Below, piece by piece: positions 8,360-34,812 of a stretch of 64,000 nt of DNA. Numbering within the stretch: the stretch's first letter is position 1; each line of letters starts with the position of its first letter. The notes under the pieces were generated by a model that worked only from the letters and a program-made list of their open reading frames with translations, was not told where the DNA came from and searched no databases. The stretch is from sequence record OQ708376.1; one strand, 5' to 3'. The position numbers were made by a program, and so were the translations under genes.

Positions 8360-8370
8360 CTATATGAAAA

Positions 8371-9416: not shown

Positions 9417-9546
9417 TTTATTAAATCTCCATGTAATAAATGTGTTTTAGTATTTATAAGACTAAAAAAGATTAAATTAAACTAATTTTTATATTCTCTA
9501 TAGTTTCATAAATATTTCTATAATACATCTATTAAAAGGGAATGTT

Positions 9547-11751: not shown

Positions 11752-11762
11752 GGACGAAAATA

Positions 11763-13502
11763 ATGAGTTGGAAACGACATATGACAGTGGGAAGGTCTAA
11801 ACTATCGACCATCCCAAATCAGTCCAGTAATAGCAATAAATCAACAGGAACGAAAACAAATTTCGCTTCCTATCTTCCTGTTGTATATAATGGATTGGCA
11901 AATCGTACTGAGCGTTATAGTCAGTATGAGCAAATGGACCAAGATCCTGAAATTAGAACTGCATTGAATATAATTGCTGACTTTTGTACTCAAAGTACTG
12001 AAGATTTTGGTTTACCATATAAAATCAAATATAAAGATGATATTGGTGATACTGAAGTAACGACTATTGAAGATCGTTTAGATGCATGGACTGAACAAAA
12101 TGATTTTAAAACACGAATGTATGAAATTGTGCGTGGTCTTCTGAAATATGGTGATCAATTTTTCATTCGAGATCCAGAAACATTCGATTGGTATTGGGTA
12201 AGTCCCAAAAATGTTGAGCAAGTATTTGTTAACGAAGCCACTGGTAAAACACCAGTAATTTATTATATACGTGACGTATCATTAAATTTGAAAGATAAAG
12301 TTTTTAGTAACCTTCAAGTAGGATTTGATAAAACCGCTTATCCAGGAGCTATTCCAACAACAATGGGTGGTGGTGGTTCAGTAGCTGCTGGTGGTGCATC
12401 TGGTTTTACAAGTCAAGGAAATACGGCTGACCCATTCAGTACTAACGGTCAATTAGACGTTATTCCTGTTGGTGCAGAACACGTAATTCATCTAACACTA
12501 AATACAGGACAAGATGGGGTATGGCCTTTTGGTACTAGTATACTTGAGGACGTATTTAAAGTCTATAAGCAAAAAGAACTTCTGGAAGATAGTATCATAA
12601 TTTATCGTGTACAACGTGCACCTGAGCGTCGTGTATTTAAAATTGATGTTGGTGATATGCAAGCACACCAAGCGATGGCTTATGTTGAAAGATTTAAAAA
12701 TGAAATCCACCAGCGTAGAATACCTTCAAACAAAGGTGGAAGTACTTCACTAATGGATGCAGCGTATAATCCATTAAGCATTTTAGAAGACTACTTTTTC
12801 CCACAAACTTCTGAAGGTCGTGGTTCAGATGTTCAAACATTACCAGGCGGTGATAACTTAGGACAAATTGATGACTTACGTTATTTCAATAATAAATTGA
12901 TTCGTGGTCTTCAAATACCAGCTTCATATCTACCACAAGGTCCAGATGATGGTGGTGTTTCATTATTTGGTGATGGTGCTACACAAGCTATGGCAAGTGA
13001 ATTGCGATTCAATAATCAATGTATGCGTTATCAACGTTTAGTTGCAAAACATTTTGATGCTGAATTCAAAAGATTTATGGTTAAAAATGGATATAACATT
13101 AGTACTTCATCTTTTGAAGTTATTATGAATCCACCTATTAACTTAGCTTCTTATCGTAAAGCTGAACTAGATGCTAAACTAATTAATACATATCTTCCTC
13201 TTAATGACTTGCCTTATATGGCAAAACAAACAATTCTTGAAAAAATGGGCTTTTCTAAAGCTGATATTGTTAAGAATGAACAAATGTGGTTACAAGAGAA
13301 TCCACAAGATGGTTCCCAACCTTCTGGTGGTGAAGAAGATTCCGCAGGATTGCAGTCTGTTGGTATTGATGCTCCAAATGATCCTGGAATGGATCTTGGT
13401 ATTGATGGAGAAGGTAATTTGGAAAGTGCTGATGCCGAATACCAAGAGCAACAGAGTGGAAGTGGTGGTTTCGACCCTAATAATTTAGGCAATTCTTTTT
13501 AA
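11763..13502 (+). CDS. gp20: Portal protein
   Basis: IYRVQRAPERRVFKIDVG, EDYFFPQ, GRGSDVQTLPGG, DLRYF. Confidence 0.95.
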   Translation: MSWKRHMTVGRSKLSTIPNQSSNSNKSTGTKTNFASYLPVVYNGLANRTERYSQYEQMDQDPEIRTALNIIADFCTQSTEDFGLPYKIKYKDDIGDTEVTTIEDRLDAWTEQNDFKTRMYEIVRGLLKYGDQFFIRDPETFDWYWVSPKNVEQVFVNEATGKTPVIYYIRDVSLNLKDKVFSNLQVGFDKTAYPGAIPTTMGGGGSVAAGGASGFTSQGNTADPFSTNGQLDVIPVGAEHVIHLTLNTGQDGVWPFGTSILEDVFKVYKQKELLEDSIIIYRVQRAPERRVFKIDVGDMQAHQAMAYVERFKNEIHQRRIPSNKGGSTSLMDAAYNPLSILEDYFFPQTSEGRGSDVQTLPGGDNLGQIDDLRYFNNKLIRGLQIPASYLPQGPDDGGVSLFGDGATQAMASELRFNNQCMRYQRLVAKHFDAEFKRFMVKNGYNISTSSFEVIMNPPINLASYRKAELDAKLINTYLPLNDLPYMAKQTILEKMGFSKADIVKNEQMWLQENPQDGSQPSGGEEDSAGLQSVGIDAPNDPGMDLGIDGEGNLESADAEYQEQQSGSGGFDPNNLGNSF

Positions 13503-13575
13503 ACATAAATAACAATGTATAAGAATGAGGGTTTATTTTTACCCTCATTTATAATGCATATTTCAAGGAGATCAA

Positions 13576-13803
13576 ATGTTAAAGGACATCTTTGAATCTA
13601 GCAGTGATTCAATGTACGACCCTGAAGATGATCAGAACGTATATAAAATTACTGATTCCAGAAAACCGAAACTAACATTACAAGTATTAAACAACTTAAG
13701 AAAGTACCGTGAATTTAAAGCACATGAAGAACAACGCCGCAAAAATGTGGTTGCAGTTGTTTATGCCGCTGCACCAACAGGTGACGGTTCTGGGTTAATG
13801 TAA
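13576..13803 (+). CDS. Small prohead-associated protein
   Basis: SD and late promoter ATAAATA at 13505; lies between portal and core genes. Confidence 0.6.
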   Translation: MLKDIFESSSDSMYDPEDDQNVYKITDSRKPKLTLQVLNNLRKYREFKAHEEQRRKNVVAVVYAAAPTGDGSGLM

Positions 13804-13904
13804 ACCGAAAATCGCACTTTTTAAAGCTTTTAAAAAAGGCGATTTTATTCAGTACTAAATAATATCATACTTTATACGAATGTAATATATCTATGGAGGA
13901 TATA

Positions 13905-14753
13905 ATGGCGAATTTAAAACTACTACAAGAAGCAATTGCGGCGTTTGCAAATGGCGAACAAGATATTGCTGATAAAAAAATGCGTAAGTATTTCGTTGAG
14001 CAAGCTCAAGAAATTAACAAACAACTAGAAGAAAGCATGGAAGATGAAGACGACGATGAAGATTGTGAAGTCGAAGTTAAAGTCAAAGATGAAGAAAAGC
14101 TTGACGAAGATTTTGATGTACAACCAGACGAAGGTCTAAATGCTGAAATCGAATACACCCTTGGTGAAGAAGATGAAAGTGCAGAAGAAGAAGTTGAATT
14201 CTCTGCTGATGCAGATGGTGACGGTGAAGACGATGTTGACGTTGAAGTGAAAGCTGATGCTGATGTTCCTTCCGAAGACCAATGGGAATCAATCCAAGAT
14301 GCTTTCCGTGGCCTACAACAAATGTTTGATGAAATCGGTGACGGTGAAGTTGATCTAGATTCTGAAGAAGAAGTAGAAGATAGCGAAGAAGAAGTTGGTG
14401 TTGACGGTGACGACGAATTTGCTGATGTTGAATTCGGCGATGAAAAATTCGGTGAATCCTTCAAACTAGAAAAAGTTGCTCCAGTTGATAAGAAAGAAAA
14501 AGCTGGCACTCATTCCAAATCTCCAGTAGCACCAGAAGCTAAATCTCCAGTAGCAGGAGCAGAGCCAGTTAAATTCGCTAAGAAAACTGACCAAGCCCCA
14601 CTACTAGACCTAGATGATAAATCTGTTCTACCAAAAGATAGCCTAGATCTTGGTAAAAATGCTCGCGGTGAAATGAAAGATGTTAAAGCACCAAAAACTA
14701 CTGCATCTAATTCTAAATCACCACTAAGCAAAGCACAACCTAAACTAAAATAA
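13905..14753 (+). CDS. Highly acidic prohead core/scaffold-like protein
   Basis: GGAGG SD before ATG 13905; D/E-rich centre and basic C-terminus; high-expression codon bias. Confidence 0.65.
   Translation: MANLKLLQEAIAAFANGEQDIADKKMRKYFVEQAQEINKQLEESMEDEDDDEDCEVEVKVKDEEKLDEDFDVQPDEGLNAEIEYTLGEEDESAEEEVEFSADADGDGEDDVDVEVKADADVPSEDQWESIQDAFRGLQQMFDEIGDGEVDLDSEEEVEDSEEEVGVDGDDEFADVEFGDEKFGESFKLEKVAPVDKKEKAGTHSKSPVAPEAKSPVAGAEPVKFAKKTDQAPLLDLDDKSVLPKDSLDLGKNARGEMKDVKAPKTTASNSKSPLSKAQPKLK
14517..14555 (+). repeat. 15-nt direct repeat AAATCTCCAGTAGCA x2 (KSPVA)
   Basis: Copies at 14517-14531 and 14541-14555. Confidence 0.8.
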
Positions 14754-14773
14754 ATATCTGAAAGGAGATCATT

Positions 14774-15397
14774 ATGAGTAGTATGATTCGTGAATGGTCT
14801 TCATTCAATGATTCTAAAGTTGTTTTGGAACATCGTGATAATGGATTTGGTGGGCGTGACTGCTATCTTCGTGGTATTGCTATTCAAGCCGACCAACGAA
14901 ATTTGAACGAGAGAATTTACCCTTTATCTGAAATTACAAGGGCAGTAAATAACATGAACCAGCGTTTAGCTAAAGGTGAAAGCATTCTTGTTGAATGTGA
15001 CCATCCAGAAACACTAACTATTAACCTAGACCGTGTAGCAGCAATGATTACTAAGGTTTGGATGGAAGGTGCTAATGGTATGGCAGAAATCAAACTACTT
15101 GATACTGCACATGGTCAGAATATCCGTAAAATGCTAGAGGCTGGTGTAAAACTTGGTGTAAGTTCTCGCGGTTCCGGTAACGTTGATTATAATGGAATAG
15201 TTTCTGATTTTGAAATTATCACTATTGATATTGTTGCTCAACCTAGTGCTCCAGAAGCATACCCAACAGCGGTATTTGAATCTCTGATGAGTAAGTACGG
15301 ATCACCTTGTAATAGTTCTAAAAAAATCACTGAATCTAAAAAAGTAAATAATTTAGATTCTGAAATATACGATTTTTTCAAGAAATTAAAAGGTTAA
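14774..15397 (+). CDS. gp21: Prohead maturation protease
   Basis: ECDHP, GVKLGVSSRGSG, DIVAQPSAPEA (His/Ser/Asp motifs). Confidence 0.93.
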   Translation: MSSMIREWSSFNDSKVVLEHRDNGFGGRDCYLRGIAIQADQRNLNERIYPLSEITRAVNNMNQRLAKGESILVECDHPETLTINLDRVAAMITKVWMEGANGMAEIKLLDTAHGQNIRKMLEAGVKLGVSSRGSGNVDYNGIVSDFEIITIDIVAQPSAPEAYPTAVFESLMSKYGSPCNSSKKITESKKVNNLDSEIYDFFKKLKG

Positions 15398-15408
15398 CAT
15401 TTTAAAAA

Positions 15409-15416
15409 TATAAATA
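15409..15416 (+). promoter_or_regulatory. Late promoter TATAAATA
   Basis: Exact consensus upstream of the scaffold gene. Confidence 0.75.
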
Positions 15417-15463
15417 TCTGTATGTTGAAGTACAGATATTTCAGTACTTAAAGGAGAGAACGA

Positions 15464-16579
15464 ATGTCTAAATTAGAAAAGCTTCTAAAAGAATCATCTC
15501 TTTCTGATGAGGCAAAACAGCTAATTCAGGAAGCATGGAATGAAGAAAAGAATACACTAGCCGCAGAGATGCGTGAAGAAATGAAAGGCCGTTATCAGCA
15601 AGATTTGGCTGAACTAACCGAAGGTTTGAACACGATGGTTACTCAAGTCATTGCTGAAGAAATGGGTGCTGTATATGAAGAGAAAAAACGTCTCGTTGAA
15701 GATCGTGTAACTCTACGTAAAACACTAAGCAATTTCTCTGCGTTTTCAAACTCTGTTTTGGCTGAAGAAGTTAAACAAATGCGTAAAGAACGTAAGCATC
15801 TTCATGAATGCATGGGTAAATTCGTTAATTTTTCTAACGGTATCCTAGCAGAAGAGCTAAAAGAATTCCACACTGAAAAACGCCAACTAGTAGAAACTCG
15901 CGTTAAACTACTTGCTGAAGGTTCACGTCAAATTGCTGAAGCTCGTAATAACTTCATCAAACGTACATCTGAAAGTGCTGCTAAATATATTGCAGAAACC
16001 ACTCAGAAGAATCTATATGCGTTGAAACAAGATCTAGTGGAAGCAAAACAAAATATGTTTGGTCGTAAAATCTTTGAAGCATTTGCTCAAGAGTTTAATG
16101 TCAAACAATTTAATGAAAACTCATTGCTACGTTCCCTAACTGAATCAATTAAATCTAAAGAAGATGAAATTGCTCAAGTTAAGCAAGAACTACATGAAAC
16201 TGCTAATGCCGTTAAAGCTGCTAAAACCAAACTACGTATTATGGAAGATGCACAAGCACGTAATGCGATTATGTCTGAACTAGTAAAACCACTAACTGCA
16301 CAGCAAAAACAAATTATGGAATCCCTTCTAGCTACTTCACCTACTGAAAAGCTTAAAGAAGATTTCAGCAAGTACCATAAGTCAGTACTTAACGGTACTA
16401 AAGTAAATGAATCTGCTACCACTCGTCAAGCAGTTCAGTCTTCCGCTAAGAAAACTCTTGCAGAAGGTAAAGTAATCACTGGCAACCGTCAGGCTATTGT
16501 TGAAAGCGAAGAAATGACCGCTGACGATATGGCATTCCTAAAAGAACTCGATGTTCTTTCAGGTATCAATAAAAAATAA
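15464..16579 (+). CDS. gp22: Prohead core scaffolding protein
   Basis: Long coiled coil between protease and capsid genes; LSDEAKQLIQEAW motif. Confidence 0.85.
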   Translation: MSKLEKLLKESSLSDEAKQLIQEAWNEEKNTLAAEMREEMKGRYQQDLAELTEGLNTMVTQVIAEEMGAVYEEKKRLVEDRVTLRKTLSNFSAFSNSVLAEEVKQMRKERKHLHECMGKFVNFSNGILAEELKEFHTEKRQLVETRVKLLAEGSRQIAEARNNFIKRTSESAAKYIAETTQKNLYALKQDLVEAKQNMFGRKIFEAFAQEFNVKQFNENSLLRSLTESIKSKEDEIAQVKQELHETANAVKAAKTKLRIMEDAQARNAIMSELVKPLTAQQKQIMESLLATSPTEKLKEDFSKYHKSVLNGTKVNESATTRQAVQSSAKKTLAEGKVITGNRQAIVESEEMTADDMAFLKELDVLSGINKK

Positions 16580-16617
16580 ACATTTTAAAGCATTTTAATA
16601 ATCAAATTTTTCAGTTC

Positions 16618-16625
16618 TATAAATA
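16618..16625 (+). promoter_or_regulatory. Late promoter TATAAATA
   Basis: Exact consensus 46 nt upstream of the capsid ATG. Confidence 0.8.
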
Positions 16626-16670
16626 ATATCATACTGAAAAACGAATATAACATCTTTAAGGAGATATATA

Positions 16671-17846
16671 ATGTCACAACTACTAAATGAATCCAAATGG
16701 GTAGCAGTAAAAGAGAAACTAGTTGAAGGTCTACAGGGTACTCGTAAGTCTGTAATGGAAACTGTTCTTGATAACCATCGTAAAGTTATGCTAACTGAAT
16801 CCGCAACTTCTGGTGCAACTACCGCTGGTAACATCGCTACTCTAAACAAAGTGATTCTACCAATTATGCGTCGTGTAATGCCAACCGTTATTGCTAACGA
16901 AATCATCGGTGTTCAACCAATGACTGGTCCAGTTGGTCAGATCCACACCCTACGTGTGCAATATGCTGATAACGCACCTGGTGTTATCGCTGGTGAAGAA
17001 ATGCTTTCTCCATACAAAATCGCTAAATCCTACTCTGGTGATCTAAATGCGGATAATAGCAACCCACAAGCTGCTCCTACTAGCCAACTAGAAGGTACTA
17101 TGGGTCGTCGCGTTAACATCCGTATTCTACGTGAAACTGTTGAAGCGAAATCTCGTCGTCTATCTGCACGTTGGACTGTTGAATCTGCACAAGATGCTCA
17201 ATCCCAACATGGTGTTGACGTTGAAGCAGAACTAATGGCTGCAATCGCTCAAGAAGTTACCGTAGAAATCGACCAAGAGCTACTAAGCCGTCTACGTGCA
17301 CTACCTGGTGCTGCTGCTGTAACTTATGACCAATCTAAAGTTACTGGTGTTGCAACCTTCGTTGGTGATGAGCACGCTGCTCTAGCAACTCTAATTAACC
17401 GTCAAGCAAACGAAGTTGCTCGTCGTACTAAGCGTGGTGCTGCAAACTGGGCTGTTGTTTCCCCAACTGCACTAACCATTCTACAATCTGCTACTACTTC
17501 TAGCTTTGCACGTACCACTGAAGGTACTTTCGAAGCACCAACTAACGTTAAGTTTGTAGGTACTCTAAACAGCACTATGCGTATTTTTGTTGATACTTAT
17601 GCAAGTGATGCAGAAGATATTCTAATTGGTTATAAAGGTAATGCAGAAACTGATGCTGGTGTGTTCTATTGCCCATACATCCCACTAATGGCTTCCGGTA
17701 CTGTAATGGACCCTAACACTGGGGAATTGGTCACAACTTTCTTAACCAGGTATGGTTATGTTCAGTTGACCGATAGCACCAGTTCACTAGGTAACGCTGC
17801 GGACTACTACAGCAAAATCGCTATCAAAAACGTTACTTTCATGTAA
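16671..17846 (+). CDS. gp23: Major capsid protein
   Basis: IIGVQPMTGPVGQIHTLR, AKSRRLSARWT, EIDQELL, FYCPYIPL, TRYG. Confidence 0.96.
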   Translation: MSQLLNESKWVAVKEKLVEGLQGTRKSVMETVLDNHRKVMLTESATSGATTAGNIATLNKVILPIMRRVMPTVIANEIIGVQPMTGPVGQIHTLRVQYADNAPGVIAGEEMLSPYKIAKSYSGDLNADNSNPQAAPTSQLEGTMGRRVNIRILRETVEAKSRRLSARWTVESAQDAQSQHGVDVEAELMAAIAQEVTVEIDQELLSRLRALPGAAAVTYDQSKVTGVATFVGDEHAALATLINRQANEVARRTKRGAANWAVVSPTALTILQSATTSSFARTTEGTFEAPTNVKFVGTLNSTMRIFVDTYASDAEDILIGYKGNAETDAGVFYCPYIPLMASGTVMDPNTGELVTTFLTRYGYVQLTDSTSSLGNAADYYSKIAIKNVTFM

Positions 17847-17890
17847 TTGTAATAGATTTAAAAGATTTAATCAAAAAAAATAAAAACAAT

Positions 17891-17918
17891 AGGGACTCTT
17901 CGGAGTCCCTTTTCTTTT
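17891..17918 (+). terminator. Intrinsic terminator
   Basis: AGGGACTC-TTCG-GAGTCCCT followed by a T tract. Confidence 0.9.
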
Positions 17919-17931
17919 TATTAAAAAACCC

Positions 17932-17960
17932 TTGACACAATGTTCTGGAATGTATATAAT
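17932..17960 (+). promoter_or_regulatory. Canonical sigma70 promoter TTGACA-N17-TATAAT
   Basis: Perfect consensus upstream of the endonuclease gene. Confidence 0.85.
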
Positions 17961-17992
17961 ACGCACATACACGAAAATAAAGAGACAAAATT

Positions 17993-19090
17993 ATGCCAAA
18001 CGTAAGTATCACCAAAGAAGAGTTTATCAGCAAAATGACTGCTAAGTATGGTGAATTTGATTTCAGTACTTTAGTATTCAAAGCAAGTAAGACAACAGTG
18101 AAATGTAACAAGTGTGGAAAAGAAAACACCAAACCTGCACTTCGTCACATTGCATGTACATGTGCATCATGTTATTCAAACATGTCACAACGTTCAAACA
18201 ACGACACATTCATCAGTACTGTAGAAACTAAATTTGGAAAAGATAAATTCAAATTTGATAAACTAAATTACACTAATGCTATATCAAAAGTAACAATTTT
18301 CTGCACAGATGAAGATCACAATGATTACTTTGAAATTACACCCAATAAATTTCTTTCTGGTAAAGGATGCCCCGTATGTAATAAAAATGAAGCATACAGT
18401 ACTGAAGAGTTCAAAGAAAAAGTAAAAGATAATTATGGTGATTTATTGGATTTAACTAACACGGTGTATGTAAATCAAAAAACTAAAGTAACTGTGTATT
18501 GTAACGCAGGTAATCATGAATGGACAGTTGATCCAAAAACTTTACTTGTTGGTAAGACTGGATGTGGTACATGCTCCGGTAAAGGCGGTCGAAGTACTGA
18601 ACGTTTCATTGAACTTGTGTCGCCTATCCATAACCATAAGTATGATTATAGCTTGGTGGATTACAAGACTAGTGATGAACATGTGGATATTATTTGTCCT
18701 GAACATGGTGTCTTTAAACAAATACCCAAATCTCATATGGCAGGAAGAGGATGTCCATCATGTGGTGAGTATGGTTATCAACCATCAAAGCCTGGATATT
18801 TCTATGTACAAAAACTATCTAATAACTCAAAAGTCGTTTACAAATACGGAATTACCGGAGACATGAAGAGACGAATTCATGAACAAAGTCGCAATTCTGA
18901 GTTCGAGCATGAAGTACTGGTAGAACGTTACTTTGAGGATGGTAATAAACCATTATTATTGGAAAAGTTTATCAAGCAATACATTGAAAGTGGTGTTGTA
19001 AGTACTGAAGAGTTACCGTCAGGATTTACTGAAACATTTGATGCTAAGTATCTTGAAAGTGTTTTAGAAATTGTAAATACTTTTAAGTAA
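17993..19090 (+). mobile_element. Free-standing homing endonuclease: four Cys/His zinc-binding repeats (DUF723/CapR-like) plus C-terminal GIY-YIG-like domain
   Basis: Repeats F...YG..D.S...Y......V...C...H........L.G.GCP.C; C-terminal GYFYV...YKYGITG..KRR. Confidence 0.75.
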
Positions 19091-19113
19091 ACAATCTAAA
19101 GGAGTTGACACGG

Positions 19114-19464
19114 ATGTTAACTGTATACAAATTTAACAAAGAAGAGTACTTAAAGAGTCAGTACTCAAATATAGAAATAAATGTTCCTTATGGTACGTTA
19201 GTTGGATATGATGAAGCCACTGAAACATTGTATTATAATGATGATAGATTGGATTATAGTTTAGATTCTTTTATAGAAGATATACTAAACACACATACTG
19301 AAGATATGTTATATGAAGAATACATAGATCATTATAGGGAACGTATGTCACAATTACACTCAGACGCTCCAGTACTAAACATTACACAAGAACCTTCTGA
19401 ATTTCAGCCCCATAATCCTTTTCAACGTTTAATAGATATTGGTTTGAAATTCACTATTAGTTGA
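19114..19464 (+). CDS. Hypothetical protein
   Basis: GGAG SD 9 nt before ATG 19114. Confidence 0.6.
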   Translation: MLTVYKFNKEEYLKSQYSNIEINVPYGTLVGYDEATETLYYNDDRLDYSLDSFIEDILNTHTEDMLYEEYIDHYRERMSQLHSDAPVLNITQEPSEFQPHNPFQRLIDIGLKFTIS

Positions 19465-19503
19465 TAGATAAATATCTCCATATTAATGATGGAGATTGAA
19501 TCT

Positions 19504-19812
19504 ATGTCACAGATATGTTATGTTATAATAAATTCTGCATGGCCTGAGTATGTTAAAATTGGTTTTACTTCAAAATCAGAAATGACAGAACGTCTAAGAA
19601 CGTATCAGACTGCTACACCATTTCGTGACTTTGAAGTATATCATGAAGTTCATTTTGATGATGCACGTTTGGCTGAAAAAGAAATACATAAAAGGCTTAA
19701 GCAGATGAATGCAACTAGACAACCCAATACCGAGTGGTTTAAAATGTCTAAAAAGATAGCAGCCAACATTATTGATTCCGTATGGGATGATATGGATAAC
19801 GACTTGCTATAG
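19504..19812 (+). CDS. T5orf172-type GIY-YIG domain protein
   Basis: CYVIIN...YVKIGFT...RL..YQT...EKEIH...EWF. Confidence 0.75.
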   Translation: MSQICYVIINSAWPEYVKIGFTSKSEMTERLRTYQTATPFRDFEVYHEVHFDDARLAEKEIHKRLKQMNATRQPNTEWFKMSKKIAANIIDSVWDDMDNDLL

Positions 19813-19852
19813 GAATAAATATAGTATATATTAATCATAAAGGGATTTATAC

Positions 19853-21463
19853 ATGAGCATAAGTTTTAATAACCCATTGGATACAATGACCAGTACTGGT
19901 GCTAATGGATCTTTAGAACTAATAGTGCTTGGTGGTACACCAACTAACCCAAGACCTATTCGTTTTAACTCGTCATCAGTTATCATACCAGTACAAACTT
20001 TACCAACTGGTGAACAAGGTGCAATGGTCTTTGATAGAAACGAGTTAGTTTTGAAGTATCATAACGGTACTAGTTGGATTGCAGTATACGATACTGATAC
20101 CATTTTAGAACCAATTAGAATTTCACTTGATGAAGTAAATAGAAAACTAAATTTAAAAGTAGAAAGTGTAACTTATAGTAGTAGTACTGTTCCTAGTGCA
20201 AGTATTAGTGGAACAAACTTAAACATTGTATTCCCTACTGCTTCTAGTGGTGGTTCTGGTCCAACTGGTCTTTACACTTCACTTAAACCTGGTGCTATTA
20301 CACAATATTCATTGACTTCTGGTCAATCTGTTGCTAGTATACGTGAACAAATGTCAGGACAATCGAATGGACAAAGTGGGAGAAACGGTTCACAAGGTGC
20401 TCCGTGGAAAACGTCTGACGGTTGGTGTTTTGCTGATGGTATGTGGTGGCAATGGGAGGGGGAAAATGGTACAATTACCAAACAAGTACCAAACCTTAAC
20501 CAAAACGCGTACTTAAAAGGGATATCCACATCAGGTGTAACTAAAACTGATAGTGTTATTGGTAGTAGCGGTAATATTAGCGGCACAGTATTAAGTGTTG
20601 CCCAATTACCATCACACTCATTTAGTTTTAGTGGGACCACAGGGGCTGCTGGTCGTCATGGTCATAGTCAAGCACTAAAAGGTATGGACCGTAGTGGTCT
20701 AAATGCGTTAACTTCAAGTAATGATAACGGTATACCAACTGTAATCAATAACATTAACGAAGCACCAGACCACATTCACTCATTTAGTGGAAACACTAAC
20801 ACACTTGGTGGAAACCAACCACACTATCATGGTATTAGTAACATTGATGTGGAACACTTTAACGTTGCATATCTATATAACATTGCTGAATCTAACGTCG
20901 CATTGAGTGAAAAAGTTGCAAACACTCGTTATGTACTAAAAACTGGTGATACAATGACTGGTTCATTGACTATTGCAAACAGTGCGTCAATTAAGTCAAA
21001 TGATACATCATTAGTTCTATATTTCCGTAACGCAAGCGGTGGTGAGCGTGCGGCAGTGTATCATAACTCTTCAAATAATACATTGAGATTACGTTCCGGT
21101 GGAGCAGAAGTTACTGTAAACTCTTCTGGTACGTTAGCTGCTCCATCATTAACTGTTTCTAACAACTCAGCTACTGTTGGTGGTAAAAATATTGTTCGTT
21201 CAATTAACGGTACTGCTGCTGATGCTAGTGGCAACGTTACTTTGCAAATTAGTACTAATAACGTACAAAGTATTCGTTTGAGTGCACGTATTGAAACAAG
21301 TAAAATACCTGATTCTTCATGGACATATACACCAGAAGGTGCATTTATGGATGGCGTATGGATTTCTGTTAATGGTAGTTCAGGCACTCACTTAGAACGA
21401 ATTAGTTATCGCTATGTTCAAATGCAAATAAATGGTAACTGGGAAACAGTACGTCAACAATAA
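19853..21463 (+). CDS. Tail fibre protein
   Basis: G/S/T-rich, HxH motifs, RYVLKTGDTMTGSL repeat, C-terminal YRYVQMQINGNWETV; late promoter at 19815. Confidence 0.85.
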   Translation: MSISFNNPLDTMTSTGANGSLELIVLGGTPTNPRPIRFNSSSVIIPVQTLPTGEQGAMVFDRNELVLKYHNGTSWIAVYDTDTILEPIRISLDEVNRKLNLKVESVTYSSSTVPSASISGTNLNIVFPTASSGGSGPTGLYTSLKPGAITQYSLTSGQSVASIREQMSGQSNGQSGRNGSQGAPWKTSDGWCFADGMWWQWEGENGTITKQVPNLNQNAYLKGISTSGVTKTDSVIGSSGNISGTVLSVAQLPSHSFSFSGTTGAAGRHGHSQALKGMDRSGLNALTSSNDNGIPTVINNINEAPDHIHSFSGNTNTLGGNQPHYHGISNIDVEHFNVAYLYNIAESNVALSEKVANTRYVLKTGDTMTGSLTIANSASIKSNDTSLVLYFRNASGGERAAVYHNSSNNTLRLRSGGAEVTVNSSGTLAAPSLTVSNNSATVGGKNIVRSINGTAADASGNVTLQISTNNVQSIRLSARIETSKIPDSSWTYTPEGAFMDGVWISVNGSSGTHLERISYRYVQMQINGNWETVRQQ

Positions 21464-21473
21464 GGAATGTGTA

Positions 21474-21989
21474 ATGCAACTAACAAATTTTAAGATGTAT
21501 GAAAAAGAAGGTGGTAATCCTAATTCTTTGTATATGATGTCCGATGAAGGTATGGATTGGTATGAATCTCGTGAATTGTTTGACATTAATAAAGCAAAAT
21601 TTATGTATGATACTAATGGTTTAATTGTTTCAGCATCATATAACATTTATGATCTAGTACCTTTAGGTTTTAGTGTTTCTGAAATTGAATATGATGGTGA
21701 TATTAACAAACTTTATGGTATGGTTTACGATGGAAATACTATTCATGACTATATTGAAACTAAAGAAGAAAAAATTGAACGCCTAAAAAATGAATTATCT
21801 AATTTGAAATACATTGCAATTCAAGAACTTGGACACTTAAAAACTGCTATGGATCTTGAGTTAGCAACTGATGAAGAAGCTGTATTGTTTGTAAAATTGA
21901 AAGATTATGTAACGCAATTGAATTCAATCAAACCAGCAGACATGATCAAGAAAACATTTTCATTTCCAGTTAAACCGGAAAAAAAATGA
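21474..21989 (+). CDS. Tail fibre assembly chaperone (Tfa-like)
   Basis: Follows the fibre gene; DWYE...SVSEI...ATDEE...LK.Y pattern. Confidence 0.75.
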   Translation: MQLTNFKMYEKEGGNPNSLYMMSDEGMDWYESRELFDINKAKFMYDTNGLIVSASYNIYDLVPLGFSVSEIEYDGDINKLYGMVYDGNTIHDYIETKEEKIERLKNELSNLKYIAIQELGHLKTAMDLELATDEEAVLFVKLKDYVTQLNSIKPADMIKKTFSFPVKPEKK

Positions 21990-22015
21990 GACAACACGTA
22001 AAGACGTGATACAAT
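21987..22015 (+). promoter_or_regulatory. Promoter TGAGACA-N16-TACAAT
   Basis: Recurrent motif with a one-mismatch -10. Confidence 0.65.
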
Positions 22016-22079
22016 TAAGTCATCTCACCGATTGTGGTGAGGTGACATTTTTTTGAAAACACACATGGAGAAATACAAA

Positions 22080-22382
22080 ATGGCTAAATCTAAAAAAGAA
22101 GTTAAAGTTGAAATTCGTGATCTAAACGATGAACAACGTAAACGTCTCGGCGATGCACTTAACAACATTGTTGTACAACTAACTTTCATTGATGATACCA
22201 AAGCATCCTTATCTGATTTTGTTTCTAGTGTTTCTGATGAACTTGGTATCGATGCATCTGATATCAAACAAGCTGCACAACGTATGTACAAAGGTGATTA
22301 CTTTGACAAACAAAATAAACTCGATAATATCGAAACTATTCTTAGTGTTACTAATAATCTTCCACAAGCAGATGATTACTAA
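22080..22382 (+). CDS. dsDNA-binding protein, T4 DsbA/GapR-like
   Basis: GGAG SD; SDELGIDASDIKQAAQRMYK resembles T4 DsbA KDELGVDGKMFNRLLALYHK. Confidence 0.6.
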   Translation: MAKSKKEVKVEIRDLNDEQRKRLGDALNNIVVQLTFIDDTKASLSDFVSSVSDELGIDASDIKQAAQRMYKGDYFDKQNKLDNIETILSVTNNLPQADDY

Positions 22383-22404
22383 TTAGTACTAAAATATATT
22401 AAAT

Positions 22405-22432
22405 AGCCTCCAATGACGGAGGCTTTCTTTTT
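22405..22432 (+). terminator. Intrinsic terminator
   Basis: AGCCTCC-aatgac-GGAGGCT followed by a T tract. Confidence 0.75.
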
Positions 22433-22461
22433 AACTTAATAAACGTAAGGGAATACAAACG

Positions 22462-25400
22462 ATGTATATCGATGCTTATATGGAACGTAAACGTACTGGT
22501 GATATTCTTCATGTAGTTGAACGTAAGAATGGTAAACGTATTCTACGCGAATTAGAACCAGTATATGAATATTATGTTGAATCCCCACAAGGAACACATA
22601 AAACTGTTTATGGTACAATGGCTAAACATTTTGAGTTTCAAACTCAAGCTCAAATGAATAAAAGTGTAGAGAAACACAAAAGTGAAGGTCTACGTATTTT
22701 TGAAAGTGATTGTAACATTACATTTAAAACATTAGCCAAAGAATATATGGGAAAAGGCTCACCCGATTTGAACATCGTGTTCTTCGATATCGAGACTGAT
22801 TTCCATAAGAAATTTGGTTATGCTCCACCATCAGACCCGTTTAACCGAGTAACCGCTATTTCTCTATATCAATCATGGACTGGAAAGGATTATGTACTTA
22901 CTTTACCACCTGCTGATATGGAAATTTATGAAGCACAAGATATTGTTCGCCAACTAAATGAAGAAACAAACGATCCTAACAGTACTGTAATTTTATATAC
23001 AGACGAAAAGGAAATGTTTATGGAATTCTTTAGTTTAATTGATGATTCTGATGTTATTTCAGGATGGAATAGTGAATTCTTTGATATTCCATATATGATC
23101 AATCGAACTAAAAAAATCTTCAATGAAGCAACAACTGCTCGTTGGTGTTTATGGAATAAAAAACCAAATTCACGTGAAGCAGACAACTTTGGTAAAACTG
23201 TTCAAACATATGATCTGGTAGGTCGCGTCCATCTTGATTATTTGGCTTTGTATAAGAAACATGCTGGTCAAGTTGAACAATCTTATAAACTAGATTATAT
23301 TGCTGAAAAAGTAACTAAAGAAAATAAAGTATCATATGAAGGTTCATTGGATAAACTTTACAGAGAGGATTACATTACTTTCTTGCGTTATTCTAAACAG
23401 GATAGTATTCTTCTTAAAAAGATTGATGCTAAATGTGACTATATCAACCTACACAATCGACTTGCACACAAAGAATGTGTACTTATCAGCACAACAATGG
23501 GTTCAGTAGCACTAATCGACACTGCTATTATCAACTTAGCACATACTCGTGGTGAAGTTGTTTTTAACAAAGCACCTAAAGATGATCTTGAGTTTGATCC
23601 AGAAATGGAATATTATGGTGAAGATGGTGAAGATGAAGATGAGAAAATTAGTGCAAAAGCAGCAGGTGCATGGGTACAAGATCCAGTACTAGGACTTGTA
23701 AGTGACCTTGGGTGTACTGACTTTAACTCTCTTTACCCTACAGTTCTACGCACTTTGGGTATGAGTACTGAATGTATTCTTGGTCAATTACGTCAAGATT
23801 ACACCGATGCGTATCTTGCAGCTAAAATCCAAGAACAGAAGAACAAATCTAAATCTAAATCATTTGAACCAGATTGGACTGCGGCATGGCATGGTTTATT
23901 TGCTGCTGTTGAATTTACAATGGTTCATGAAAAGTCAGAAGAAACATTGATTGTTGATTTAGAAGATGGGAGTTCTTTTAAAGCAACGGGCAAAGAGCTA
24001 TATGATATTATTTTTGCAGAAGATAGTACTATTGTACTTAGTGCAAACGGAACACTTTTTGATAAGTCTAAGTCTGGTGTAATTCCTGACATTCTAACTC
24101 AATGGTATTCTGAACGTAAAGCACAGCAAAAAATGGTCATTGACTACAAACATATGTATACTGATGGTTGGGAGTTTAATGGCTATGAAAAAGTCGAACC
24201 ACTACTATCAAACTATACCCCTGGTACAATGTTTAGAACTAATATTCATGATAATGATCCTGTATACTTACTTCGTAAAGAAATTGGTAAAGGACAATGG
24301 GATGAAGTTGCTAAGTTGATTGTAGAAAATGGTTTAGTACTAAAAGATGGTCGTATTTTCTGTCCTAAAGAAGAAAAAGATTACTTCAAACAACGTAGTG
24401 CTTTCTGGAAACAGAACCAACAGATTCGTAAGATTCTTCTAAACAGTCTATATGGTGCACTATTGAACAAAGGTTCTCGTTTCTTTGACAAACGTTTAGG
24501 TCAATCCGTAACATTAACTGGACGTTCTATGACCAAACATATGGCAAGTCGTATCAATGAGATTACTACTGGTGTATATAATCACCAAGGTGGTTCAGTA
24601 ATTTATGGTGATACTGACTCAGTTTACTTTAGTGTAACGCATTATCTGAAAGAACAAGGTATTCCATATAATCTATCTAAAGAAGAGATTGTTGATATGT
24701 ATATTAAAATTGGTGAAGAAGTTGGTGAATCTTTCCCATCATTTATGCATGAGATGTTCAACACTGGTATTGAAAAAGGTAAGATTGTTGGTGCAGACCT
24801 TGAGATGGTTGGTTCACGTGGCCTATTCTTGAAGAAAAAACGTTATGCAATTCTGAAGTACTGGGAAGATGGGTTCCGTAAAGATATTGATGGTAAACCA
24901 GGTGAAATCAAAGCGATGGGTCTTGAAATTAAACGCTCAGACACGCCAAAATACATCCAGAACTTCCTAGAAGAGACTCTAATCGCATTACTGGTAGGTG
25001 AGAGTGAACAGCAGCTAAAACAGCGTGTACGTGAGTTTAAGGACGTATTTAAGGATATGCCTGTACATGAAAAAGGTTCACCAAAAACTGTAAAAAACTA
25101 CACTAATTTAGAGGCTGAATATCAGCTAACTGGTAAGTGTAAAGTTGGTCACGTTCTTGCTGGTATCCAATGGAACCGTCTACGTGAAGTTTATGATGAT
25201 AAATCTGTTCCAGAAGTAACAGATGGAACAAAAGTAATTGTCTGTAACTTAAAAGATAATCCTATGGGAATTAAAGCTGTTGGATATCCAATTGACTGTG
25301 TTGAGTATCTACCAGAATGGTTCTTGGAACTACCATTTGATACTGAAAAAATGGAAGAGATTGTTCTAACTAAAAAATTAGAGAATATTTTTGGTATTTT

Positions 25401-25467
25401 GGATATGGATATTGGTATTCATGAAAAAAGTACTGCGTCAGTAAACAATGGATTCTTCACTTGGTAA
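22462..25467 (+). CDS. gp43: DNA polymerase family B with 3'-5' exonuclease
   Basis: FFDIETD, GWNSEFFDIPY, DFNSLYP, KILLNSLYG, YGDTDS, KKRY. Confidence 0.97.
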   Translation: MYIDAYMERKRTGDILHVVERKNGKRILRELEPVYEYYVESPQGTHKTVYGTMAKHFEFQTQAQMNKSVEKHKSEGLRIFESDCNITFKTLAKEYMGKGSPDLNIVFFDIETDFHKKFGYAPPSDPFNRVTAISLYQSWTGKDYVLTLPPADMEIYEAQDIVRQLNEETNDPNSTVILYTDEKEMFMEFFSLIDDSDVISGWNSEFFDIPYMINRTKKIFNEATTARWCLWNKKPNSREADNFGKTVQTYDLVGRVHLDYLALYKKHAGQVEQSYKLDYIAEKVTKENKVSYEGSLDKLYREDYITFLRYSKQDSILLKKIDAKCDYINLHNRLAHKECVLISTTMGSVALIDTAIINLAHTRGEVVFNKAPKDDLEFDPEMEYYGEDGEDEDEKISAKAAGAWVQDPVLGLVSDLGCTDFNSLYPTVLRTLGMSTECILGQLRQDYTDAYLAAKIQEQKNKSKSKSFEPDWTAAWHGLFAAVEFTMVHEKSEETLIVDLEDGSSFKATGKELYDIIFAEDSTIVLSANGTLFDKSKSGVIPDILTQWYSERKAQQKMVIDYKHMYTDGWEFNGYEKVEPLLSNYTPGTMFRTNIHDNDPVYLLRKEIGKGQWDEVAKLIVENGLVLKDGRIFCPKEEKDYFKQRSAFWKQNQQIRKILLNSLYGALLNKGSRFFDKRLGQSVTLTGRSMTKHMASRINEITTGVYNHQGGSVIYGDTDSVYFSVTHYLKEQGIPYNLSKEEIVDMYIKIGEEVGESFPSFMHEMFNTGIEKGKIVGADLEMVGSRGLFLKKKRYAILKYWEDGFRKDIDGKPGEIKAMGLEIKRSDTPKYIQNFLEETLIALLVGESEQQLKQRVREFKDVFKDMPVHEKGSPKTVKNYTNLEAEYQLTGKCKVGHVLAGIQWNRLREVYDDKSVPEVTDGTKVIVCNLKDNPMGIKAVGYPIDCVEYLPEWFLELPFDTEKMEEIVLTKKLENIFGILDMDIGIHEKSTASVNNGFFTW

Positions 25468-25478
25468 GGAGTAATAAT

Positions 25479-25628
25479 ATGGTTATTGTAAATGAAATTG
25501 AACTAAACTATGATGAAGTAAACGATACTTTCACTAATGAGATGTTGAATCTTACTGAAGAAAGTGTAAATGAGGCATGGGAAAAATATGTAGAATGGAC
25601 TTCATTACAAGGTAAAAATAATGAGTAA
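25479..25628 (+). CDS. Small acidic hypothetical protein, 49 aa (below ORF-track cut-off)
   Basis: AAGGAG SD, ATG 25479, MVIVNEIELNYDEV...KNNE*, overlaps the next start. Confidence 0.65.
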   Translation: MVIVNEIELNYDEVNDTFTNEMLNLTEESVNEAWEKYVEWTSLQGKNNE

Positions 25629-25917
25629 TATATATAAGCGTATTGGTGAAGTATTAGAAGGTAATGGTATCATTAATTCTGTACTAGCATATGATAATGA
25701 TGAAGAAGTAGTTCTAATTGGTGCGGGTTTTACTCGCACTGGTTCAGTGGAAGTTGACGGAGAGATTGCTGATGTTTACACTCTTGTGAAAAAGCGTAAA
25801 GTTGTTTTTGTCGATGATGTACATACATTAAAAGACTTGAAAAAATTACGCGATAAAATTGGCATGAGTTCTACAATTGATAAGCCTTATCTTCAACGTT
25901 GGAATACAAAATACTGA
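25621..25917 (+). CDS. Hypothetical protein
   Basis: 98-aa ORF in operon context. Confidence 0.65.
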   Translation: MSNIYKRIGEVLEGNGIINSVLAYDNDEEVVLIGAGFTRTGSVEVDGEIADVYTLVKKRKVVFVDDVHTLKDLKKLRDKIGMSSTIDKPYLQRWNTKY

Positions 25918-25925
25918 TAAAAAAT

Positions 25926-25954
25926 TGAGACAAGCATCATTTTTGAGATATAAT
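25926..25954 (+). promoter_or_regulatory. Promoter TGAGACA-N16-TATAAT
   Basis: Recurrent motif. Confidence 0.7.
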
Positions 25955-26018
25955 GGTGCTTGTAGTAATCTTACATAAAAACATTTTTTGATTAACAAAT
26001 AAAACGGAGAATTATATA

Positions 26019-26750
26019 ATGGATCTACGCAACGTACTACGTGACCTCGTAAACACAACCAGTGGTATTGACTTCTCTTGTATTGCAGTAAGCAGTGAAG
26101 ACCGTGGTGAAGGACAACGTGTATATCTAGAAGCGTACACAGATGACCGAACTCTTGTAATGCGAGCATATACTAAAGAAGATGTTCCTGAAGTTCAGGG
26201 TCGTTTTGGCTTAGGTAATCTAGGTCTTCTTCAGGGTCTAATGTCTCTAAAAACATACAGTACCGAAGGAACCACAATCACATCAAATGTTAAAGATGGT
26301 TCAGTTAAAAGTCTGGCATTTAAATCTGAAGATGCAAGCACTACATTTATGGTACAAGCTGAAAAACTTATTCCAGTTCAACCACGTTTTCATGAACAAC
26401 CATATGACGTACAGGTTATTCCTAGTGCAGCAAAAGTTCAGGAACTAAAGAGTTTTTCTGGTGTATTTAAATCTTTTAGTTCTCTTGTAACTCCGTATAC
26501 TGAAGGCGACACCCTATACTTTCACGTTGGTGAGAAAAACAAAAGTAACCACGTTGGTTCTCTAGCTTTTTCTAAAACTGAAGGTGAATTAGGTCTTGGT
26601 TTTGGTTATAATATTGATCGCGTACTTCAAGCATTATCTCGCGTATCTAATGCCGAATCAGTATCACTTGGTATTACTAAAACTGGTATGCTAAATGTAA
26701 CACTAGATACTGGAATTGCAGTATACAAATTTTACGTAACAGGCTGCTAA
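26019..26750 (+). CDS. Probable sliding clamp, T4 gp45-like
   Basis: 243 aa, alternating beta/alpha pattern, FGLGNLGLL resembles gp45 FAIYDL; strong codon bias. Confidence 0.55.
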   Translation: MDLRNVLRDLVNTTSGIDFSCIAVSSEDRGEGQRVYLEAYTDDRTLVMRAYTKEDVPEVQGRFGLGNLGLLQGLMSLKTYSTEGTTITSNVKDGSVKSLAFKSEDASTTFMVQAEKLIPVQPRFHEQPYDVQVIPSAAKVQELKSFSGVFKSFSSLVTPYTEGDTLYFHVGEKNKSNHVGSLAFSKTEGELGLGFGYNIDRVLQALSRVSNAESVSLGITKTGMLNVTLDTGIAVYKFYVTGC

Positions 26751-26758
26751 TATAAATA
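26751..26758 (+). promoter_or_regulatory. Late promoter TATAAATA
   Basis: Exact consensus. Confidence 0.7.
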
Positions 26759-26814
26759 ACGGGGAACACTATGTTCCCCAAATTAGTTTGATTTAAAAAG
26801 TAAAGGAATACAAA

Positions 26815-27021
26815 ATGCCATTATATACATATCGTTGTGAAAAAGAAGAATGCAAACATAGCATGGAAAAAATTGTTAAAATTGCAAATCGTGATGAACC
26901 TCATGATTGTCCTAAATGTAATGGTGAAAAAACTATGAAGTTGGAAGTGTTCACTCCAGGTGATAAGGGTGCTAATCTTTATTTCCGTGGAAAATGGTTT
27001 GCAAATACTGGAGGTTACTGA
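26815..27021 (+). CDS. FmdB-family zinc-ribbon protein
   Basis: MPLYTYRC..C...CPKC...FRGKWF. Confidence 0.75.
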   Translation: MPLYTYRCEKEECKHSMEKIVKIANRDEPHDCPKCNGEKTMKLEVFTPGDKGANLYFRGKWFANTGGY

Positions 27022-27022
27022 T

Positions 27023-28040: not shown

Positions 28041-28045
28041 CATAT

Positions 28046-28080
28046 AAAAAAAAAGGAGAGCAAATGCTCTCCTTTTCTTT
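28046..28080. terminator. Bidirectional intrinsic terminator
   Basis: AAAAGGAGAGC-aaat-GCTCTCCTTTT between convergent genes. Confidence 0.85.
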
Positions 28081-28089
28081 TGAAAAATA

Positions 28090-28779: not shown

Positions 28780-28793
28780 AATCTATCCTCCTA

Positions 28794-29554: not shown

Positions 29555-34812
<5,258 letters not shown>

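Follow-up and report, generated by a model that had tools for sequence, protein, structure and literature searches.

Results

An over-abundant palindrome in a jumbo phage

The window analysed here, that is, the whole stretch of 64,000 nucleotides (64 kb) under study, corresponds to positions 186001-250000 on the plus strand of the record for Escherichia phage vB_EcoM_CRJP21 (OQ708376.1, 366,301 bp, genus Asteriusvirus), a Rak2/121Q-like jumbo myovirus. It was placed by comparing window positions 17000-25000 with record positions 203000-211000, which are 100% identical. The window contains genes for the baseplate, the head, DNA polymerase, terminase, recombination, helicase/primase and ribonucleotide reductase, and across it, within genes and between them, the palindromic hexamer AGTACT recurs 104 times, or 1.6 times per kb. 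The analyses below show that AGTACT is a genuine DNA-level signature word of the Rak2/121Q-like jumbo phages, with (T)C-AGTACT-G(A) as its preferred context.

The palindrome was originally noticed from the sequence alone, through nine copies at 18065, 18215, 18398, 18593, 18913, 19001, 19145, 19160 and 19371, all of which are exact. That original prediction extended the over-representation to the entire window and put the chance expectation from base composition at roughly one copy per 3 kb. Both statements agree with our counts: base composition predicts 21.5 copies in the window, and random shuffles of the window that preserve its dinucleotides yield 18.6 ± 3.7 copies, with a maximum of 28. 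By raw frequency AGTACT is the seventh most frequent hexamer, among A-rich words. Under a maximal-order Markov model of the window the excess is small (104 observed versus 83 expected), because the words AGTAC, GTACT and GTAC are themselves inflated by the hexamer (160 versus 115, 162 versus 119 and 311 versus 250, respectively). Other words of the form NGTACN are not enriched in the window: GGTACC and CGTACG are absent, and TGTACA occurs 30 times versus 34.5 under the strict codon null described below.

Ninety-nine copies lie in genes and five between genes. The genic copies fall in all three codon phases, as had been claimed (62, 12 and 25 copies in phases 0, 1 and 2, respectively), and those in phase 0 are the codon pair AGT ACT. 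It is important, then, to ask whether the excess might be an artefact of codon usage, dipeptide content or paralogous repeats. AGT, ACT and GTA are favoured codons, 62 of the 99 genic copies are AGT-ACT pairs, and the Markov excess just given is small. When synonymous codons are shuffled within each gene, however, 31.2 ± 4.7 copies are expected versus the 99 observed (by phase, 20.5, 2.5 and 8.1, each below the observed count), and when all codons are shuffled 23.2 copies are expected in genes. Likewise, the 113 Ser-Thr pairs of the window are encoded by AGT-ACT 62 times, versus 19.2 expected from codon usage.

The strictest null, of the Katz-Burge type, permutes third positions among codons that specify the same amino acid and have the same neighbouring base. 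That is, it preserves the protein, the codon classes and every dinucleotide. In 500 such shuffles we find 63.0 ± 5.0 genic copies (maximum 77) versus the 99 observed (z = 6.7); a null that preserves codons and dinucleotides had been set beforehand as the refuting test, and the excess persists under it. AGTACT is the top outlier among all 4,096 hexamers in this test, with CAGTAC second and GTACTG fourth. In intergenic DNA the five copies compare with 0.64 expected from a first-order Markov model, or 1.1 from a mononucleotide shuffle (P = 0.004). The flanks of the copies, moreover, vary beyond the nearest one to four positions, and we therefore reject a longer repeat or a mobile element as their source. 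Three nulls thus reject a codon or dipeptide artefact, and we assign the artefact explanation as a whole a vanishingly small probability.

Sites and genes in the window

The features of the window to which we refer are as follows (copies are of AGTACT).

1..64000: dispersed copies, 104 in all, preferring the context C-AGTACT-G (C at -1 in 39/104, G at +1 in 48/104)
18065..19376: nine-copy cluster, six copies in gene 17993-19090 and three in gene 19114-19464; the densest stretch of the window
17993..19090, plus strand: gene with six copies, equal to 121Q gp604; labelled 'DNA polymerase II', evidently a mislabel
19114..19464, plus strand: small gene with three copies, 8.5 per kb versus 0.16 expected
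7594..7599: intergenic copy within an 838-bp gap separating minus-strand genes
13851..13856: intergenic copy with AAATAATA directly after it; the gene at 13905 lies about 50 bp downstream
15443..15448: intergenic copy flanked by a stem-loop and by the ribosome-binding site that serves the scaffold gene at 15464
22385..22390: intergenic copy right after the stop codon of gene 22080-22382, ahead of a terminator-like hairpin
31098..31103: intergenic copy ahead of the gene at 31109, separating its ribosome-binding site from its start codon
16671..17846, plus strand: major capsid gene, equal to 121Q gp603; a counter-example with zero copies

Gene identities are taken from the RefSeq relative 121Q (NC_025447.1) and gene coordinates from CRJP21, because the product names of CRJP21 are visibly displaced. 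Over the 44 kb that align, 121Q and the window share about 99% identity, and over window positions 17000-25000 they share 97.1%. In the GenBank record of CRJP21 the product names are shifted relative to the genes; the coordinates agree with 121Q and the labels are untrustworthy. The name 'structural protein', for example, stands on the 1001-residue DNA polymerase, 'DNA polymerase II' on a nuclease-like gene of 365 residues, 'terminase large subunit' on a protein of 99 residues, and 'ribonucleotide reductase large subunit' on one of 72 residues.

Two intergenic examples had originally been given, of which the one at 13851 is correct and the one at 31099 is off by one, its true start being 31098. 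The nine-copy cluster is not a special locus: when 104 sites are placed at random in the window, at least nine of them fall within some 1,312-bp interval in 8% of placements (P = 0.08). The gene with six copies carries 5.5 per kb versus 1.3 expected from the synonymous shuffle. Its matches to a zinc-finger (DUF4379) and to T5orf172 are both weak; from these it looks like a mobile nuclease-type accessory gene, and it is missing from fEgEco12, another Escherichia phage of the clade, at the corresponding position. Besides the major capsid gene, further conserved late genes of at least 600 bp contain zero copies (13905-14753, 14774-15397, 26019-26750 and 34939-35991). The first of these, a virion-protein gene, has an unusual composition: window positions 13989-14755 comprise 766 bp without TAT, where about 23 are expected (approximate P = 1.6e-7), and ATA and TTA are also sparse nearby.

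The 121Q genome and its proteins

The excess extends over the whole of 121Q, whose 348,532 bp contain 903 copies, with all 10-kb bins above expectation. Its coding DNA has 745 copies versus 215 ± 13 under the synonymous shuffle (z ~41), or 368, 142 and 235 versus 114, 36 and 64 by phase, an excess of 3.2-3.9 fold in each; its non-coding DNA has 5.1 copies per kb. The synonymous-level excess is uniform, about 3.2-3.6x, over gene classes and gene lengths, and the position of copies within genes is flat, with no trend. Relative to a shuffle that destroys amino-acid order, the excess is 4.0 in late and replication genes and 7.5 in small accessory genes.

The motif also leaves a trace in the encoded proteins. 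In 121Q the dipeptides Ser-Thr and Val-Leu occur at 1.45x and 1.39x their expectation, compared with 0.98 and 1.00 for the reversed pairs Thr-Ser and Leu-Val. Since this inflation accompanies an excess at the synonymous level, the pressure acts on the DNA and shapes proteins where that is tolerated. Thus, AGTACT pressure bends protein sequences, at Ser-Thr and Val-Leu pairs.

An annotated tRNA-Ser of 121Q (75464-75555) has the anticodon ACT, which would read AGU, the Ser codon within AGT-ACT; an unmodified wobble A is unusual, and this anticodon comes from annotation only.

Spread of the excess across phages

For comparison across the clade we used the neighbourhoods of the DNA polymerase gene, 27-43 kb per phage, in which the observed and expected numbers of AGTACT are these.

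RaK2 (Klebsiella): 88 observed, 9.7 expected
GAP32 (Cronobacter): 90 observed, 12.1 expected
CBB (Pectobacterium): 56 observed, 8.5 expected
Munch (Salmonella): 44 observed, 7.8 expected
fHe-Yen9-04 (Yersinia): 48 observed, 7.6 expected
BF (Serratia): 52 observed, 8.1 expected
XaC1 (Xanthomonas): 76 observed, 11.2 expected
fEgEco12 (Escherichia): 90 observed, 13.7 expected
JNE01 (Escherichia): 94 observed, 14.4 expected
PA5oct (distant relative): 3 observed, 13.7 expected
Atu_ph07 (distant relative): 1 observed, 3.4 expected
BME3 (rV5-like coliphage): 0 observed, 8.9 expected

In CRJP21, RaK2, GAP32, CBB, Munch, fHe-Yen9-04, BF and XaC1 the ratio of observed to expected is 5.6-9.1 and AGTACT ranks first or second of 4,096 hexamers; its density is about 1.6-2.8 per kb in every sampled genus of the clade. 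A 50-kb sample of E. coli K-12 contains 3 copies (0.06 per kb), the phage being some 30-40x denser. Because the excess is present on eight host genera and is not found in PA5oct, Atu_ph07 or BME3, we conclude that it is a trait of the phage lineage and not of the host. Our literature search found no report of the AGTACT motif in these phages, and on their palindromes or methylomes nothing relevant beyond the digestion notes on RaK2 and fEgEco12.

Other words are over-represented as well. Next after AGTACT in several genera (the window, GAP32, CBB, Yen9-04, BF and others) come CTGGTG, GGTGGT and TGGTGA, together with CAGCAG, GCAGCA and CTGCTG; in CBB, CAGCAG is first (35 versus 3.3). The excess of CAGCAG may partly be a side effect of the purging of CAGCTG and CTGCAG.

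Evolution of individual sites

The retention of individual sites was compared with the expectation from phase-matched hexamers. Relative to fEgEco12 (85% identity), 53 of the 70 aligned window sites are intact versus 29.4 expected, and relative to JNE01 (80% identity) 44 of 67 versus 22.4. Among frequent hexamers AGTACT ranks 3rd of 402 in conservation in the former comparison and 6th of 340 in the latter, with TAAATA in the same company. At 68% identity retention is 42% versus 20% for controls in RaK2, and 30% versus 17% in GAP32; in the RaK2/GAP32 comparison 175 of the 211 AGTACT site columns occur in a single genome. Individual sites are thus under constraint, being retained about 2x as well as comparable hexamers, and yet they turn over in the long term while their density is held at about 2 per kb. 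With an excess that is independent of frame, present in intergenic DNA too, clade-wide and constrained at the level of DNA, the original description as a highly iterated palindrome is borne out.

TAAATA is the core of the T4-type late promoter. Both it and TATTTA are strongly depleted within 121Q genes (92 versus 264 and 55 versus 241, respectively), a pattern consistent with avoidance of spurious late promoters, and the surviving copies are those found among the best-conserved hexamers.

A density that is held while positions turn over could also result from molecular drive without benefit to the phage, in which sequence-biased repair, gene conversion or a cycle of nuclease and repair regenerates AGTACT, both by changing near-matches into it and by mending mutated copies. 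The uniformity of the synonymous-level enrichment fits such a process, as does the fact that enrichment is highest in weakly constrained accessory genes. Sites aligned with RaK2 number 24, 6, 13, 7 and 6 at zero to four differences, so that one-difference states are under-represented among those that are not conserved; the deamination neighbours AATACT and AGTATT are mildly depleted in 121Q coding DNA (0.80 and 0.87 of the synonymous expectation); and the phage encodes many nucleases (EndoVII, DenV-like, HNH and GIY-YIG/T5orf172). Other neighbours, however, are enriched under the same null (AGTACA 1.37, AGCACT 1.44, AGTGCT 1.51), which leaves no clean signature of single-mismatch repair, and we reject a neighbour depletion of the kind left by very-short-patch repair. 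That repair, a mechanism proposed for the cyanobacterial palindrome HIP1, has in E. coli an effect far smaller than that seen here, which amounts to 6-9x over dinucleotide nulls together with altered dipeptides, and no Vsr-type gene is among the annotations. The fixed registers that AGTACT takes in promoters with diverged spacers (see below) suggest function instead. Altogether, we regard drive as a rather unlikely explanation.

Symmetry of the flanks

In 121Q the two sides of the motif mirror each other. Against a background of 0.16, C stands at -1 with a frequency of 0.44 and its mirror at +1 with one of 0.47; for G at -1 and its mirror at +1 the frequencies are 0.10 and 0.06, respectively; and farther out, positions -2 to -4 are rich in T and the mirror positions in A. 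The two flanks vary independently of one another, CAGTACTG occurring 194 times versus 188 expected. Given mirror symmetry with independent halves, we expect a two-fold symmetric reader of double-stranded DNA rather than a single-strand or RNA signal. We considered a LexA box (TACTG) and dropped it, the order and spacing of CAG..CTG being wrong.

An island without ACT

Outside the window, a region of 121Q (161,803-169,314) is devoid of ACT on the coding strand, against an expectation of about 142-144, and the reverse complement, AGT, has its normal density; the next largest ACT-free gap in that genome is 459 bp. This block consists of about 20 small plus-strand early genes, in which CTN and TCT are also depleted 2-3 fold. 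The same 7.6-kb gap is present in phAPEC6 despite 412 substitutions relative to 121Q, none of which creates ACT, and in fEgEco12, which is about 77-82% identical here, the gap is at least 8.3 kb. Being common to three diverged genomes, the ban on ACT is therefore real and maintained. The window contains nothing comparable, and we found no description of the block.

Within these islands AGTACT is absent, and the commonest hexamer is AGTACA, with 41-48 copies (5.3-5.4 per kb). AGTACA is the only orientation of that variant that avoids ACT. The replacement suggests that AGTACT pressure tolerates a change at an outer position, and a DNA binder that recognises half-sites fits this better than does an enzyme strict for the hexamer.

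The ban itself is strand-specific and points to RNA or single-stranded DNA as the level at which it acts; evasion of a ribonuclease that recognises ACU would be one example. One may ask, then, whether AGTACT too functions in RNA, with AGUACU as a nuclease site or with self-complementary copies pairing, given that a strand-specific phenomenon lies nearby in a conserved island of 7.5-8.3 kb and that a palindrome present twice in the same transcript can always pair with itself. But mirror-symmetric flanks with independent halves fit recognition of double-stranded DNA, intergenic DNA and promoters are equally enriched, and AGTACA, the substitute within the island, is not self-complementary. An RNA-level function is accordingly highly improbable in our judgement.

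Placement at early promoters

Copies are densest in 121Q at 130-150 kb, where they reach 65 per 10 kb and where very small early genes, served by sigma70-type promoters, form an array. Using the strict pattern TTGACA/TTGCAA-N15-19-TATAAT/CATAAT, we find 52 promoter matches in 121Q, 30 of which carry AGTACT at fixed registers; early promoters with AGTACT lie, for example, at 142999, 145492 and 147613. Relative to the start of AGTACT, TATAAT lies at +7 (18 cases), TTGACA at -15 (17) or -5 (8), and TTGCAA at +5 (14). The palindrome thus stands either just upstream of the -10 element (TTGACA-N9-AGTACT-G-TATAAT or AGTACT-GG-CATAAT) or fused to the -35 element (AGTAC-TTGCAA, AGTACT-A-TTGACA or TTGAC-AGTACT), and some promoters have both placements, 20-22 bp apart. 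Several of the AGTACT-bearing promoters have diverged spacers. These arrangements suggest an operator-like role for the motif at early promoters.

Directly upstream of this promoter cluster with its highest AGTACT density lie, on the minus strand of 121Q at 117-131 kb, some 14 paralogous RCC1-repeat genes in tandem, whose products the annotation calls 'DNA condensation' proteins.

A palindrome could also be the site at which an enzyme of replication, recombination or topology acts, such as topoisomerase II, a primase or a bidirectional Chi-like signal. The dyad symmetry with its GTAC core would suit a symmetric cleavage complex with a 4-bp stagger, A|GTAC|T; a primase could start at GTA on both strands; topoisomerase II subunits, a DnaG-type primase, Mre11/Rad50-like gp46/47, UvsX/Y/W and EndoVII are all encoded; and one site per 400 bp or so is of the order of the density of Chi and uptake sequences. 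The promoter registers, however, would be left unexplained. Primase sites are trinucleotides, common by chance, and we know of no need for enriched hexamers in T4-type systems. We therefore judge this explanation very unlikely.

Methyltransferases and restriction

The original prediction linked the palindrome, in a broad list of alternatives, to a phage methyltransferase, a DNA-binding/packaging protein or a recombination/repair signal, and proposed a search for a methyltransferase. Our results speak neither for nor against a packaging or recombination signal. 121Q encodes two such enzymes, gp91 (C5-cytosine, PF00145) and gp417 (Dam-family N6-adenine, PF05869). While the iterated palindrome itself has stood, the C5 enzyme is disfavoured as its cause. 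Orthologues of gp91 with 63-78% identity are found in RaK2, GAP32, CBB, XbC2 and EJP2; none with at least 52% identity is found in Eneladusvirus, Munch/SE_PL or XaC1, all of which are equally enriched in AGTACT. Conversely, the AGTACT-free BME3 carries a C5 methyltransferase 51% identical to gp91. The authors of the RaK2 study report methylated CpG from bisulfite sequencing (data not shown) as well as Dam-type resistance (PMC3622015). Since AGTACT contains no CpG, enriched phages lack the orthologue and BME3 has the homologue without AGTACT, gp91 is unlikely to be the cause. In JNE01, ph0011, UE-S1, A4 and TH47 the C5 methyltransferase matches fall in two separate places (residues 78-286 in one), and the gene may be split or interrupted in those Asteriusviruses.

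The second enzyme is the better candidate. The gene for gp417 lies outside the window, at CRJP21 record positions 59509-60027. Its closest homologues in the phage collection as a whole, among the matches listed, are confined to Rak2-like phages and occur across enriched lineages (Asteriusvirus, Munch/SE_PL, RaK2/K64-1, EJP2, XaC1, Yen9-04 and the Erwinia Eneladusviruses); GAP32, CBB and BF were not seen among the matches listed. At this locus (193985-195036 in 121Q) a cytidylyltransferase/nucleotidyltransferase gene invariably comes next to the methyltransferase gene, on its downstream side, in Asteriusvirus, RaK2/K64-1, Munch/SE_PL, EJP2 and Hallingskeid, and the two may form a functional module.

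Selection against many other palindromes is evident in these phages. GCGC is totally absent, with 0 versus 27 expected in the window and 0 versus 153 in the 348.5 kb of 121Q. CTGCAG, CAGCTG and GGTACC are absent from 121Q coding DNA (versus 77, 62 and 53 expected, respectively) and indeed from all 349 kb of that genome; CCATGG, GGATCC, TGGCCA, GCATGC, ACCGGT and others are also zero in the window; and GATC is depleted (observed/expected 0.52-0.57). The purged set differs by genus, CTTAAG being zero in RaK2, GAP32, CBB and BF. With so many palindromes purged, these phages are evidently under restriction pressure. In BME3 (PP239276.1, 118227-145201, 27 kb), CTGCAG, CAGCTG and AAGCTT are zero along with AGTACT (0 versus 8.9); its lack of AGTACT suggests that AGTACT-cutting enzymes act on coliphages, which makes some 900 sites in an Asteriusvirus the more surprising.

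Could AGTACT, then, be the target of an orphan phage methyltransferase, most plausibly gp417, and serve as an epigenetic mark in the manner of GATC/Dam or HIP1? As a 6-bp palindrome the word looks like a typical type II methyltransferase site, gp417 has the distribution just described, other 6-bp palindromes are purged under restriction, and a phage with about 900 copies might need protection from enzymes of the kind at which the rV5-like coliphage hints. Furthermore, where aligned sites differ by a single change, C<->T at the motif cytosine is the most frequent one (29 of 96), though such an excess is also expected from ordinary GC-to-AT mutation bias; in an AT-rich genome it is not diagnostic, and we have rejected it as a signature of 5-methylcytosine deamination. 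Several observations stand against methylation as the explanation. Besides the case against the C5 enzyme, known PF05869 enzymes are GATC-specific or non-specific, and it is Dam-type resistance that was reported for RaK2. Virion DNA of fEgEco12 is cut as predicted by ten enzymes, ScaI not among them (PMC13070987), which argues against global hypermodification or non-specific adenine methylation; the latter conflicts in particular with the complete EcoRI, HindIII and ClaI digests. A strict hexamer enzyme leaves the AGTACA substitute unexplained, three enriched phages were not seen among the listed gp417 matches, and methylation alone leaves the selection for sites unexplained. We consider this explanation unlikely, though worth keeping in view.

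Discussion

A putative reader of phage DNA

The symmetric flanks, the independent half-sites, the promoter registers and the substitution by AGTACA together fit a DNA-binding reader. The interpretation we tentatively prefer, at somewhat less than an even chance, is that the phage encodes a symmetric DNA-binding factor which recognises AGTACT, marks phage DNA and also touches early promoters. This putative reader would have two-fold symmetry and recognise AGTACT in double-stranded DNA; a DNA-binding protein acting as a dimer is its likeliest form. The high density of sites, about one every 400 bp, would let it mark or organise phage DNA; and at early sigma70-type promoters, where AGTACT overlaps the -35 and -10 elements, its binding would modulate early transcription.

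A number of points weigh against this interpretation. The protein is one that we purely infer, no candidate having been singled out and no systematic search for binders having been made. The spacing of AGTACT is close to random (coefficient of variation 1.18), with no regular spacing or helical phasing found, and so gives no pointer to a regular array. Biased repair or conversion would equally yield retained sites and a held density, and the Dam-family methyltransferase gp417 may itself read AGTACT or act in the same pathway. In the ACT-free island, AGTACA sites are not conserved above background (15 of 35 versus 36.5%), so that they may instead be relics. As for the promoters, many of the AGTACT-bearing ones in 121Q are visibly paralogous copies, the 30 kb of early region examined in Serratia phage BF have only four promoter-like matches and no AGTACT register, and the window's five intergenic sites share no common promoter context; the operator role therefore rests on one genus.

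A bolder form of the DNA-binding reader would make AGTACT a sequence-encoded 'self' label: a phage protein nucleates on the 900 or so sites, coats or organises the 350-kb genome, and shuts early promoters. Taken as a whole, this seems to us doubtful. Were it true, phage DNA would be shielded from nucleases, or told apart from host DNA while the latter is broken down, and the label would be a functional alternative to the base hypermodification or the protein 'nucleus' of other jumbo phages.

Since DNA-level selection keeps AGTACT, something probably reads it as a mark of phage DNA. The excess implies either such a reader or drive, in phages whose genes are mostly unassigned. The question is testable, as the motif is known, there are about 900 sites per genome, the hosts are laboratory strains of E. 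coli, and nature supplies controls in the relatives without the excess and in the island where AGTACA replaces it.

Comparison with known systems

The closest likeness is to HIP1 (GCGATCGC) of cyanobacteria, likewise a short palindrome that is hyper-abundant against compositional and codon-aware nulls, occurs in every frame of coding sequence as well as outside genes, and is conserved in abundance over a clade. HIP1 sites too are more conserved than control words (PMC5861425), and the observed/expected ratio reported for HIP1 is 15-300, compared with 6-9 for AGTACT. AGTACT differs further in being an AT-rich hexamer without a GATC or CGATCG core, in belonging to virulent phages rather than cellular genomes, in being embedded in promoter cores as well, and in that a C5 methyltransferase is disfavoured.

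With the GATC/Dam/SeqA/MutH system AGTACT shares a symmetric palindrome that can sit in promoters and sensitise them to the state of the DNA, and a Dam-family enzyme is conserved in the phage clade. GATC, however, is depleted in the phage, and its enrichment in E. coli is much weaker than that of AGTACT here. The DNA uptake sequences (DUS), uptake signal sequences (USS) and Chi are dense words, about one per 0.4-1 kb, that act as signatures of 'own' DNA; like AGTACT they occur in genes in all frames, affect the encoded peptides, and turn over in position at a held density. They are non-palindromic and orientation-dependent, acting in uptake or with RecBCD, whereas AGTACT is a perfect palindrome. 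Canonical Chi (GCTGGTGG) is itself not notable here: the plus and minus strands carry 3 and 1 copies, respectively, in the window, and 18 and 11 in the 349 kb of 121Q.

The SlmA-binding site of E. coli, GTGAGTACTCAC, is a 12-bp palindrome with G at -1 and C at +1 of AGTACT. It shares the central AGTACT with the phage motif, and its copies, dispersed over the chromosome, are recognised by a protein dimer. The phage disfavours the SlmA flanks (G at -1 0.10, C at +1 0.06), and we reject SlmA sites as the explanation: GAGTACTC occurs at 3 of the 903 sites in 121Q, versus 194 for CAGTACTG.

Lastly, AGTACT is the same hexamer as a ScaI-type restriction site, and the rV5-like coliphage avoids it wholly, as would be expected of a restriction target. 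Phages are textbook cases of palindrome avoidance. In the Rak2/121Q-like phages, by contrast, AGTACT is enriched while other 6-bp palindromes and GCGC are purged, and we identified no enzyme to match the site; one palindrome raised 6-9 fold amid purged palindromes is a clear anomaly, and it has been kept over eight host genera.

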